Source: Trichosphaerium sp. ATCC 40318 (Eukaryota; Protista; Tubulinea). From it: a DNA stretch of 64,000 nt. Shown here one piece after another: positions 29,600 to 34,366 of the stretch. Where the stretch lies: NCBI GenBank assembly GCA_038496445.1, contig JALMLS010000130.1, positions 124,001 through 188,000 on the forward strand. Reading direction: 5' to 3'. The notes beneath the pieces were generated by a model. It worked only from the letters and a program-made list of their open reading frames with translations, was not told the DNA's origin and ran no database searches. Each line of letters begins with the position of its first letter. The stretch's first letter is position 1. Made by a program: the position numbers and the translations under genes.

Positions 29600-31942
29600 A
29601 TGTACACACAGCGCTATTGTACGCTTTTTTTATTATCTACAGTAAGCAAAAACGTGCGGTCGGCACGGATTTAAATCATATTGGGTTTTTACTCTTTGTA
29701 GTGGTTGTTTTTTGCTGTAATGATACTCCCTACAACCGCAAGGTTACAGATGTTGTTAATACACCATGAAGAGTTGGAACCTTTCACTGCAGCCAACTTA
29801 CCGTGCGTTTTTTAAGTTTTTTGTTTAATTTTAACAATTTACGGAAAATCTCTAAATGGCTCACACGTGCGTAGGTTCGCTTCAGAAATACCAAAGGTTG
29901 TTTTTTCAGGTCGTATAATACCAAATAGTTGCCAAGATGTGAATTTTACGGAAACTATAATCGTTGTACCATCAGAAGAGAATGGATTTGATACGAGAAT
30001 AAGGTATTGCAGGTTTTTTATTCTTGATTGATTGTTCAATGTCGTTGTTTTGAAACAACCACTCATGGATGCACTACTGTTTTTCTTAATCATCTTTTGT
30101 TAAAGGAAGGCTCAAGCGAAAGGGGCAAGTGGTGTAGTAATGGAATCTCTAGAGAAGGGACCCGCAGGAAACGGTACGAGTGATGAAAATAGTGCACAGT
30201 TTTTTTTTGCCAAATAGCCTTTCTTTAGAGTGAGTTCTTTCTTTTCACTTTGTTTTCTCCTTGAGGTTGTGCTTGTTCTTACACAAAATAAAGGGTACTA
30301 TTTTTTCGACAAAGGAAACTATGATGATATAACAATACCTGCAGTGGAAATAAGCAGTACGGTACCAAGCACGCCTTCACGTGATTTAATGAAGTTTATT
30401 CAGAAAGTGATTTTCAGAAATTGATGACTTACCTCACGAATTGCAGTGATAGCACTTTAGTATCTGTACAAACACACGAAGGTACGTATTTTAGGTTTAA
30501 TATAAACGAACATACTCACGTGAATTCACAACCTTAGATGATAATCCGTTCATACAAGTCCATAAATCTACCGGTTTTTTGATTGGAGTTCTTCTCATAC
30601 CTCCAATGTGGTCTTGCTTTAACCTTGGTCTTATTCTTCTACAAATATTTAAAGCAAAGCGCTCTGGTAAGCTTAAAATGTCAACACCTATTGTTGTGAT
30701 ATGTCTAGAGGCAGCAGCAAACTTTTGTACGTGCTAGCGTATTTTATTTGCCTTTTTAAAGAACTTATTTTACGACAATCCACGTGTCTAACGAAACGCG
30801 TTTTATCGCTTATTTCTCCCAATAAAACTATACAGTGCTTGTTAGACTAAATTCGGCCAAGTATTTGTTTCAGAAATCGTTTGTGGGCACTTTTTTTAGT
30901 TTCAAATATTTTTTGTAGTTTTGTCTATTTTTGTTAACAGAAATTCTAGGCCGGCTATTATACTTCACTGTTGATCCGTTTAATGGTCGACACATAAATG
31001 TAGCTTTACACTCTATTCTATCTGGAGTATGGTTCCCGTTTGCATGGAGTGCTATATTCGTTGTTGCTCTTCATTGGTATGAAGTAATGACTCATAGAGC
31101 AGTTATGCCAAACGGTTTTTTGGTGAAAACTAGGATACCTTTTTACATTGTCAGTGCAATAGTCATGTCAGCGAGTTTCCTTGGTCTATTAGTTGGTAGT
31201 TTTGTATTTGTATTCAGCCAGTATTACGTACGGACAGAGCTTTTTAATGGATATTTTTCTTTTCTTTTTTCTGTTCAACGAAAATTAATCAATCTTCTGA
31301 CCTAATGTCTTAGGTCAATATCGCTCTCATATTCATGGCTAGTGCACTAACTGGTTTGATTATATTTTACCTTACATGTGGCATTCGGGTTCTTTATAAA
31401 CTATGGAACATACCATCTAACAAAGCTGTTGATAAAATTTACAGAGTACGAAAAGACTTCTCAACTTTTTTTTTCTTTGTTGTTTGCAACACAACCTTTT
31501 CTGCAAACCTACCGTTTTCACTGTCCTCATGTGATTTATTTTAGATACTTTTCAAAGCACTTGCCGTTGGGATAATAGTTATAATTGCGATTTTCGCTAT
31601 CATTTATTGGGAAATTCCTTTCACAAACACTTCAGCAACTGCTTACTTTGTACCGATCATGGTTTGGTACTATTGTTTGATGTTAGCATCAACAATACAA
31701 ATAACAAATGTATTATACACCTTTGATGGTGAAGAGAAACAATCAGGTATGTATTTGTGCATCTAGTCTTACCAACGTTCTAAATTTTGTTCAAAAAAAT
31801 AGGTATTTCACCAAAAGAAACATCAGAACCAAATTTGGACCGTATTATAGCGGAAGATTCAAAAGTAAAGCCTGTAGAAGGAGCGTGTAGAATTAAGAGC
31901 GTAATAAGTGAGGACACTTCGAGTACTACTGGCGAGAAGTAA
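29600..31942 (+). CDS. Signal peptide plus protease-associated (PA) domain plus a multi-pass (about 7TM) receptor-like domain
   Basis: PA motif KAQAKGASGVVM...DITIPAVEIS, followed by hydrophobic helices (RLLYFTVDPF, FVVALHWYE, FYLTCGIRVL). Confidence 0.7.
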
Positions 31943-32050
31943 GAACAAAAAAAATGCGAAAACGCTTTTGTATTTTTCCGAAACAATTTGTTTCAACCAC
32001 GGTAAAATAATGAAACTATAAGTATAAAATACATTACATTTGTAAGATTA

Positions 32051-34001
32051 TCAAAGTCCACGTGATCTCATTTCTCTTTGAACAGCTACCATAGAGCGAT
32101 ACTTTTTGCCATTTTCATCGAAAAAATATTTATCGAATCTACCCTTTGTAGCACCTGCTTTCCTTTGAACGAGTGTCATACGCCATCCCTAAGAACATAT
32201 ATGTTTAGTAAAGTATTTGTCTTGATGATTTATTACCAAGGGTAGTACAAAGGTGTCTGTCTTTTTTGGAAAGTGTTTCTTTGCCTTTAATTTCTTTGAG
32301 TTTGGCGCTGTGGCAGTTTTCTTTGTTGGTGCAACTACGGAGTTAACAAAATTTTCAGTATCCGAATCATCACTTTCACTGACATCAGGGATTATCTTAG
32401 AGCTCTTGTAATAACTTATCTTTCGTAGTTTGCGAGGTGAACGTCTAAGCACTTTTTTTTTCAAAGATGGTTTTTTCAGTTGTGTAATTTTAGTACGTTT
32501 AGAAGGTGTCTTCTTCTTGTTACTGGAAGCTTTCGCTACAGTCTTTGATATCTTTTTCCTCTTTGGAGACCTAGCTGTCATAATTGGCGGATCAACATCA
32601 GTGAGGCGGACTCTCTTGTATTTTTGGACAAAACTCTTGTGGTTCTTCCTGAAAACCAGAATCAGTTTTTTTAAAGTCGTCTTTTATTAATTTCGCACCT
32701 GAGTGAGGCCCACCAGTCTTCTTCGTCCGTCGAGAGCTCTCCAAGTTGCTATTGTTTTGTTATTAAAGATTAATATTATTGTAAATTAAATCTTACATGA
32801 GCACACCAAACACGTTCGCCTTCAATTGCGATTTTTTTTACTTTTTTACCAGGTTTTGCTTTTTTCTTTTTATGAGCATTCGCAAGCCACCCTTCACGAA
32901 TTAGAGATATTTAACAGTATTCCAGTAACCTCACTTACCGTGGTACCGACTAAAACAGAAGAGTAAATAACAAGAGCTGCCAAAAAATAAGAGCACTTAC
33001 TTGAGCATGTGATCCTGTGGTTCAGTTGTATCCCATTCTCCGCAGCAAAAGATACGGTAGCTATATTTAGATTAGGTTCATACCATACAGCTTAACAAAT
33101 AATAAAGTCACACCTGTCTTCTATGTACTTTCCTACTCCCTTGAACTCCCTGACACTTTCCCAGTCTCTTATATAAAATTAGAACAAACACCATGAAAGG
33201 CACTGGAAAAATGAACAAGTTCCATGGCTTTTACAAACAGTCTTACCTTGTTTCCCATTCGGAGCTCAGTTGTACAATGTACTTGGCGCGTACATTATGT
33301 AACCTTTGAGGATAAGAAAAATAAGTTACAATAAAAAAAACGGTTTTGTGTTTTTCTTTTGGATTATTCTCGAAACCACGTGATAAAAATAATTTCATTA
33401 CGTACCCCAGAGGTCGTAATATTTCTGCCACTTCGCCTTGAGTAGCTTCAGCTACCTACGAAAGGAGCTATGAGACAGAGAATACCAAAAGCAAAATGTT
33501 CAGCCACGCACATCGCTTGGTGTTGGGTACGTCGTGAAAAGCTCGTAAATAACTGATTTGACTTGTTTAGGCGTAGTTCTGTTTAAAAGCTACCACAGTT
33601 AAGAAATAGGCTATCAACGTTGTTTACGAACCATGCAGGCTATTACGAGACGCCATGGATCGTAAAATAGAAGTTCTTGGATAAGGCCCTATTAAACAGC
33701 GTGTTAGTACAAAAAACAGGCGTAATGGCGTACGTGTGGTGATAGCGGAGGTATATAAACGGTTTTTTTTGAAAGATGCTGTGGCGTCGTTGTGGTTTTA
33801 TACCCGAGCCTTGTTTTGCTCCAGCTAGGTTCTATTAGGCATGCATAATCCATACAAGTGAAAAAGAAGTCTCGCAAATGTTCATTTTCTGCAAACAACA
33901 AAAAAGATTCAAGTTTTCTTTTTAGTATACTTTATCAGTTGCTTCCTTGTAATATTTTGTACTTTAGGTGCAAGTTTAGGCTTTGGTTTTCGTCTTGGCA
34001 T
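32051..34001 (-). CDS. MBD4: MBD4-family G:T/G:U mismatch DNA glycosylase (HhH-GPD) with a C-terminal methyl-CpG-binding domain
   Basis: Spliced: YIPPLSPHGLIQELLFYDPWRLVIACMLLNRTT...ILRPLGLHNVRA...[35 protein letters not shown], then a basic linker, then LPLGWRMTLVQRKAGATKGRFDKYFFDENGKKYRSMVAV. Junctions from the glycosylase to the MBD stay in frame with GT-AG introns. The 5' start is uncertain (33853 or 34001). Confidence 0.88.
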
Positions 34002-34366
34002 TATGTTTCAATTGATCTGCTTGAAAGAAGAGCGTTTGTTTAGTTATCCAAGCTTTTACAAAGATACAGTGAAGTTGATGCAACGTGACTTGCGCTTTTT
34101 AAGATGTGACCTATGCTGGTTTTTGTTAAATGAAAATGTTGCAACTTTCTGTAGTGTTGCTTAACTGCCACTGACAACTTAACGCAATTCACAGTTGTTC
34201 AGTGTGGCTTATGGCAAACATTGCAAGGCGACCTATGCATACATCATACACATAAAGTCAATTGTATGTAGAGTCAACCTTGGTCTCAGAGGAAGTACTT
34301 TTTTATGTTTCTCTGCAGATAAAGCTTATTTGTATAACGTCATTTTTTGTTCTCACGGAAGGTCTT

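Follow-up and report, generated by a model that had tools for sequence, protein, structure and literature searches.

An expressed Trichosphaerium gene with a predicted MBD4-type glycosylase ahead of a short C-terminal methyl-CpG-binding domain

In methylated genomes the commonest point mutation is the CpG-to-TpG transition, and the chief protection against it is MBD4. How its methyl-CpG-binding domain (MBD) helps the glycosylase is debated; recruitment, scanning and direct contact between the domains have each been considered. The window analysed here, a 64-kb stretch of DNA from Trichosphaerium sp. ATCC 40318 (AT-rich, at 36.6% GC, and dense in introns), raises this question from an unusual side. 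An earlier note on its sequence described the motifs of an MBD4-type glycosylase, then a basic linker, then a final exon (32051-32188) encoding an MBD; all of these are present, on the minus strand. Is the locus one gene, are the two domains what they appear to be, and what might a protein with this domain order do?

The gene lies on the minus strand, from about 34117 to 32017, and has 13 exons and 12 GT-AG introns. The exon chain was first worked out on the DNA by requiring an unbroken frame and introns of 42-106 nt with GT-AG ends; the RNA contigs described below reproduce its junctions and correct its 5' end. The full-length product has 407 aa, and an isoform lacking 45 nt (32452-32496) encodes 392 aa. 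The parts of the gene are as follows.

33931..34117, minus strand: exon 1; 5' UTR and the first 71 coding nt, with a basic N-terminus (MPRRKPKPK...)
33825-33930, minus strand: intron 1, removed in RNA contigs
33734..33824, minus strand: exon 2; glycosylase lead-in, ending ...YIPPLSPH, in frame with exon 1
33632-33688, 33512-33589 and 33406-33455, minus strand: exons 3-5; glycosylase core, junctions seen in RNA contigs
33247-33303, 33114-33167 and 33001-33060, minus strand: exons 6-8; glycosylase core, junctions seen in RNA contigs
32939..32949, minus strand: exon 9; 11-nt micro-exon with the RYH codons of the glycosylase C-terminal (K/R)YHxWL motif
32797-32891, 32699-32748 and 32237-32648, minus strand: exons 10-12; end of the glycosylase (WLAN...) and linker
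32017..32188, minus strand: exon 13; short MBD (45 aa, GWRM...RSRGL), stop codon and 3' UTR

Splicing was tested on contigs from four public runs, belonging to two studies, over 31700-34300. The contigs are spliced, and the runs are therefore RNA; they report presence, not abundance. Six of the predicted joints (33688|33734, 33589|33632, 33455|33512, 33303|33406, 33167|33247 and 33060|33114) were seen in contigs, as were 32748|32797, 32648|32699 and both flanks of the micro-exon. The micro-exon itself is visible in runs X3, X4 and X5, where the joint 32892|33001 holds 10 letters between its sides, matching 32939-32949. The junction that carries the linker exon into the MBD exon, 32188|32237, was found in all four runs and so in both studies. 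A single contig of 1289 nt (X5 record 14) extends from 34077 to 32017 and contains the 5' UTR, the whole frame and the 3' UTR; its length is the exact sum of the exons, with all 12 introns removed, plus an optional thirteenth. This optional in-frame intron (32452-32496, 45 nt) is spliced out in X4 and X5, at a cost of 15 aa, and kept in X1 and X3. A minor isoform in X3 uses an alternative donor at 33963 and is frameshifted.

Translation starts at an ATG at 34001-33999 on the minus strand, as placed by the RNA contigs and the frame. Contig ends in the 5' UTR range from 34077 to 34130, and exon 1 reaches to at least 34117. The joint 33824|33931 (CT..AC on the plus strand, that is, GT..AG on the minus strand) occurs in runs X4 and X5, and in an alignment exon 2 pairs with the ...WVPPRSPY segment of the canonical MBD4 P0036. 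An acceptor at 33888 for the upstream exon was ruled out: it gives a stop, and the RNA puts the acceptor at 33824. The start codon proposed in the earlier note, at 33853, lies inside intron 1 and has to be given up; the gene is longer than the 32051-33853 assigned to it there. At the other end the stop codon is a TGA at 32051-32053, followed by a 3' UTR of at least 34 nt. The idea of a single transcript over 33400-32100 fared better, given spliced contigs in the four runs of two studies and one contig that spans everything. Once the exons are joined, 407 codons (392 in the shorter isoform) can be read with no stop ahead of the MBD exon. This is one expressed gene, with one transcript and one reading frame that contains both domains.

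The locus is also transcribed in the other direction. A spliced RNA runs antisense across the 5' half of the gene; on the plus strand it carries its own GT..AG intron of 44 nt (33526-33569), and it retains the minus-strand introns. Elsewhere in the contigs, the 3' end of a convergent neighbour is merged with an overlapping transcript.

33404..33761, plus strand: antisense spliced RNA over exons 2-5 (X1 record 3 and X3 record 8, from two studies)

The N-terminal end of the joined frame holds the glycosylase domain, at about aa 45-180. Exons 3-8, which encode 16-26 aa each, cover the canonical MBD4 catalytic domain without a gap. When the 64-kb window was scanned in six frames with a profile made from 231 MBD4 glycosylase domains, the five highest-scoring matches all fell in this gene, on five exons that follow the order of the profile; together with a sixth, weak but collinear exon match they cover profile positions 13-130. 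Searches with canonical MBD4s (tblastn) matched at E values of 5e-10 and 2e-5. Taking the exons together (107 columns), 43-51% of the residues are identical to those of animal MBD4 domains, and no subgroup stands out. The family model Pfam PF00730 did not match a 26-aa exon taken alone, and the locus is absent from its six-frame matches in the genome, at exon lengths of 16-26 aa. The key residues are all found in recognisable motifs: LIQE (equivalent of Gln449), LLNRT (Arg468), GVGKY (Tyr540) and PQDHML (Asp560); RPLG|L is a further motif of exons 3-8. In human MBD4, Asp560 is catalytic, Gln449 and Tyr540 read the base, and Arg468 fills the gap left by the flipped base (PMC3479182). By its sequence, the N-terminal domain can be classed as an MBD4-type helix-hairpin-helix mismatch glycosylase, with thymine and uracil as predicted substrates. 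With an MBD4 glycosylase domain as query, no second locus of this type was found in the 70-Mb assembly.

Between the domains lies a lysine-rich linker, residues 180-359, in which 52 of 180 residues are Lys or Arg. It had been described as basic, which it is, and as about 190 aa long; the actual length is 180 aa. It holds one acidic patch, SESDDSDTE, and no Pfam family matches it. Allelic differences within the gene, as seen in RNA contigs, all fall in the linker exon and none in either domain, in what is a very small sample.

The last 48 residues (aa 360-407) form the MBD. Taken by itself, the last exon reaches 25.7 bits against Pfam MBD (PF01429), above the gathering cut-off of 21 (E 8.6e-6). 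The peptide on which the earlier note had based its MBD does come from this exon, except for its 'LPL', which is encoded by the preceding one: the LP-x-GW start of the domain straddles the last splice junction, and the domain is therefore complete only in spliced mRNA. The best sequence match in the PDB is the MBD of human MBD4 (4lg7, E 3.9e-5), with MBD2 and MeCP2 close behind. In an alignment of 21 sequences (the exon and 20 other MBDs), the nearly invariant columns are all kept: G1, W2, R9, G12, G16, D19, Y21, G27, R31 and S32. These include the residues that read mCpG, R9, D19, Y21 and R31, which align with R111, D121, Y123 and R133 of MeCP2, as previously proposed, and also with their counterparts in 4lg7 and 2ky8.

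The fold points the same way. An AlphaFold model of the exon (pLDDT 85) has a strand-strand-helix core, in which residues 3-8 and 18-23 are strands, 29-30 form a short bridge and 33-43 a helix. The top 35 Foldseek matches in the PDB are all MBDs, with TMq values of 0.63-0.78 and an rmsd of about 2 A; the best is the MBD4 MBD with methylated DNA (TMq 0.78, rmsd 1.9 A). The E values of these matches lie at 0.01-0.6 because the model has 45 residues. Identity and predicted fold together mark the last exon clearly as an MBD. It should be noted that the MBD is partial. It covers positions 14-50 of the 77 in the Pfam model, and the Arg-Ser pair is followed by 14 residues before the protein stops. 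The C-terminal hairpin of canonical MBD4 and MBD2/3 (the F-D-F segment, positions 51-77) is absent, which could weaken or abolish methyl specificity. The same end point is seen in other natural MBDs (database proteins P0031, P0033 and P0037). The crystal chains of AtMBD5 and AtMBD6 with DNA have 48-50 residues and match the model at a TMt of 0.65-0.72, which suggests that so short a core can fold; the AtMBD6 chain is DNA-bound in its crystal.

A reader of methylated CpG presupposes methylated DNA, and the genome (70.3 Mb in 642 contigs) was searched for the relevant genes. The DNA methyltransferases that the earlier note had put forward as a genome-wide check were found. One DNMT gene has a target-recognition exon that matches DNMT1 structures only (E 1.8e-17), and there is a second DNMT. 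The genome also contains at least three SRA-domain loci and a gene combining PHD and MBD. Searches of the genome for TET/JBP gave no match; control genomes were likewise without one. Within the window the observed/expected ratio of CpG is 0.79, a mild deficit, and that of TpG/CpA is 1.13-1.15. This gene set and the CpG deficit would fit a 5mC system with CpG methylation. HSP70 was at most about 68% identical to the proteins listed, to those of animals and fungi alike, which indicates that the lineage is poorly sampled.

We read the protein as an MBD4-like repair enzyme in which the MBD and the basic tether would keep the enzyme on methylated CpG DNA, where T or U opposite G is removed; a probability of about 75% seems appropriate. 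By analogy with mammalian MBD4, the MBD, probably aided by the basic linker, would anchor the enzyme where DNA is rich in methylated CpG. T or U opposite G, which arise when 5mC or C is deaminated at CpG, would then be flipped out by the glycosylase. The gap in the duplex would be filled by the equivalent of Arg468, the equivalents of Gln449 and Tyr540 would read the base, and the Asp560 equivalent would activate a water molecule to cleave the glycosidic bond. The glycosylase is expected to be monofunctional, and the abasic site would be handed to base excision repair. Since a long flexible tether separates the domains, their order should not matter for such a mechanism.

The fusion may be real and its short MBD may still have stopped reading 5mC. 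The MBD would then be a general DNA- or protein-binding module, like the MBD/TAM domains of MBD3, BAZ2 and SETDB, and the enzyme would resemble plant MBD4L, a G:T/G:U glycosylase that is not targeted to methylated DNA. The domain does stop 14 residues after the Arg-Ser pair, without its C-terminal hairpin; however, all four residues that separate 5mC binders from non-binders are kept, among them the Tyr and the basic residue before Asp-x-Tyr, which MBD3 has lost. That family members which do not bind 5mC exist is known (PMC6673714), but the best matches of this domain, by sequence and by fold, are 5mC-binding MBDs with methylated DNA. The genomic evidence is divided: no TET match was found (in a search that was silent in the control genomes too), whereas the DNMT1-type gene argues for CpG methylation. 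On balance this explanation, the main alternative, is improbable, although it deserves real weight.

Two more sceptical explanations are unlikely. The apparent fusion could be a product of read-through or assembly from two units, a stand-alone glycosylase, terminating inside the last intron when this is retained, and a small MBD peptide made separately. If left unspliced, this intron (32189-32236) would indeed bring an in-frame stop 15 codons after LPL, but it is retained in no contig; every run that reaches it shows the splice, and the intron delimited by the junction 32188|32237 is canonical, with GT-AG ends and a typical length of 48 nt. An ORF at 32051-32179 has an ATG of its own, but 48 nt leave no room for a promoter, and with LP-x-GW spanning the junction, splicing is needed to complete the MBD. 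Overlapping transcripts can be merged in De Bruijn contigs, as happened here with the antisense RNA and the 3' end of the convergent neighbour; even so, we give the two-unit explanation very little credence. No greater credence is due to a gene that is expressed but decaying, a lineage-specific oddity without a selected function. Protein searches yielded no orthologue by which constraint could be gauged, but the frame is intact over 13 exons, including a micro-exon of 11 nt, and none of the catalytic or DNA-reading residues has been lost. What few allelic differences the RNA contigs show within the gene fall in the linker and spare the domains. The gene is, besides, the sole MBD4-type gene found, in a genome with a DNMT1-type gene. 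We continue to favour the reading of a repair enzyme held on methylated CpG DNA.

The RNA-confirmed frame gives the order glycosylase, linker, MBD, the reverse of the animal MBD4 architecture. In PMC3458566 and PMC4176167, the MBD of MBD4 is placed N-terminally and its glycosylase C-terminally, in agreement with what the earlier note said of vertebrates. Its statement that plant MBD4-like proteins lack the MBD accords with PMC6728418. The MBD4 group has been treated as an animal family (PMC8330077). Among 266 database proteins, none of the 183 that contain both domains has the reverse order; in all of these the MBD comes first, in a sample that is mostly animal. A metagenome scan with an alignment query gave 80 glycosylase loci, 33 of them with an MBD on the contig; the MBD is upstream in 32 of the 33, and a fusion of glycosylase then MBD occurs in none of these animal-heavy contigs. 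One apparent reversed fusion, L030, was rejected: it consists of two ORFs in different frames, with stops in all frames between them, and the second ORF, whose ATG lies 26 nt after the stop, begins like the N-terminus of a canonical MBD4.

Searches with the MBD itself gave a similar picture. The 45-aa MBD exon, a query with little reach among 1.8 billion proteins, produced 37 matches there, the best at 54% identity, with no close orthologue. Four of the 37 are canonical MBD4s; no reversed fusion and no copy of the protein is among them. In two word-based protein searches with alignments whose rows included the single exons, the best 120 of 248 matches and the best 120 of 1473 were animal MBD4s. 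A feature search of the Atlas returned generic MBD clusters only, with scores below 0.9. In the literature searched, neither the order glycosylase then MBD nor an MBD4 in amoebae is described. The reverse order was thus not seen in any of the sequences compared, which does not make it unique.

How the two domains came together is less clear. The scores of the MBD exon against the MBD4, MBD2 and MeCP2 structures in the PDB lie within 2 bits of each other, which assigns the MBD to none of the three. With these near-equal scores, and a glycosylase that is no closer to any one animal group, an independent fusion and a domain permutation are both conceivable. The pairing of a reader with a repair enzyme may be independent of domain order and may have arisen twice. 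It is possible, and we suggest it tentatively, that a non-animal lineage with DNMT1-type CpG methylation independently joined an mCpG reader to an MBD4-type T:G glycosylase at the opposite end, a case of convergence with selection on tethering.

Such a protein would matter both for the evolution of DNA methylation and for the question of how lesions are located by MBD4. Its natural occurrence with the reverse order and a tether that is long and basic speaks for simple tethering, and at 407 aa it would be a compact object on which to test the coupling of MBD and glycosylase. If the fusion is independent, it would point to repeated selection for deamination repair where 5mC lies; if it is convergent, it would be a natural experiment in which tethering was selected, rather than domain order or a specific contact between domains. 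The coupling would also reach beyond the animals, where PMC8330077 places the MBD4 family. The 5mC genes of this little-sampled eukaryote, a DNMT1-type gene among them, would be joined by a repair component.

Relatives of the single parts are found in several known systems. The plant protein AtMBD4L (AT3G07930) also has an MBD4-type catalytic domain outside animals, together with a long disordered region, and it prefers a CpG context (PMC6728418); it has no MBD, whereas the Trichosphaerium protein carries one at its C-terminus. Large viral contigs (L102-L106) encode MBD4-type glycosylases that score 87-105 bits on the MBD4 domain profile. In contrast to the Trichosphaerium enzyme, the five viral glycosylases and those on metagenome contigs lacking an MBD are stand-alone, intronless ORFs of 138-253 aa, with no MBD within 5-8 kb. 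Short MBDs resembling the one described here, of about 45-50 residues and without the F-D-F hairpin, are found in the cores of Arabidopsis MBD5/6 (7fef, 7feo) and, at the end of the protein, in arthropod Copia retrotransposons (PMC6673714). The MBD of P0037, an integrase with a C-terminal MBD, is 47% identical. None of the MBD5/6 and Copia MBDs is fused to a DNA glycosylase.

The closest comparison is with animal MBD4, including human MBD4 (MED1). Both proteins have the two domains on one chain with a long low-complexity linker between them, and they share the catalytic and base-reading residues, with glycosylases that are 43-51% identical; the MBD of MBD4 is the best PDB match to the Trichosphaerium MBD by sequence and by fold. 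They differ in that the MBD comes first in animals and the glycosylase comes first in Trichosphaerium, and in that the Trichosphaerium MBD is short, ending right after helix 1 with no C-terminal hairpin. An MBD and an MBD4 glycosylase on one chain are thus a known combination; what appears to be new in this gene is their reverse order.

The glycosylase-MBD gene is rich in introns: its 1.2 kb of coding sequence is split by 12 of them. Two of its splicing features, and the gene that converges on it, are located in the window as follows:

32939-32949, minus strand, micro-exon of 11 nt, with introns of 51 and 47 nt on its two sides
32452-32496, minus strand, optional in-frame GT-AG intron of 45 nt within the linker exon
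31700-31932 (plus strand) and 31801-32187, membrane-protein-like gene, convergent, with a 56-nt intron at 31745-31800

The micro-exon is correctly spliced in three public RNA runs. The linker intron is spliced out in runs X4 and X5 and retained in X1 and X3; its splicing removes 15 basic residues. The 3' ends of the glycosylase-MBD gene and its membrane-protein-like neighbour are within about 100 nt of each other, and a single RNA contig (X3 record 4) spans both. Antisense RNA from the plus strand (33404-33761) was also observed over exons 2-5 of the glycosylase-MBD gene. The antisense contigs (X1 record 3 and X3 record 8, from two studies) have a 44-nt GT..AG intron spliced out on the plus strand (33526-33569), and they retain the minus-strand introns.

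Four HSP70 genes without introns are found in the genome assembly (G000), as two pairs of opposite orientation:

G000:C8:25652-27466 (minus) and 66110-67924 (plus), HSP70 pair 1
G000:C56:189563-191377 (plus) and 211415-213229 (minus), HSP70 pair 2

Their lack of introns contrasts with the rest of the genome, which is very intron-dense.

The assembly also contains methylation-related genes, two of which lie about 105 kb apart on one contig (C7):

G000:C7:645518-646681, gene with a DNMT1-type catalytic domain and target-recognition domain (L002)
G000:C7:751514-751624, PHD-finger-plus-MBD gene (L001)

RFD domain matches are found on C28 and C340, away from the DNMT1-type gene.

Other MBD4-type glycosylase loci have different layouts. 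Metagenome contig ERZ1738542 NODE-26755 (L030) has two ORFs, 67-981 and 1008-1394. The first has an MBD4 glycosylase domain at its end; the second begins 26 nt past the stop of the first and has a full MBD at its start. The frames differ and the intervening DNA has stops in every frame; the locus may hold MBD4 copies in tandem, packed very closely or arranged like an operon. Large viral contigs from IMG/VR (L102-L106; up to 165 kb) carry stand-alone MBD4-type glycosylases, which score 87-105 bits against the MBD4 domain profile. No MBD was found near these viral glycosylases.

A C-terminal MBD is also present in a retrotransposon-type protein. P0037 (524 aa) has an integrase core domain and an MBD at its extreme C-terminus, which shares 47% identity with the MBD of the glycosylase-MBD gene. 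P0037 fits the arthropod Copia-MBD retrotransposons described in PMC6673714.
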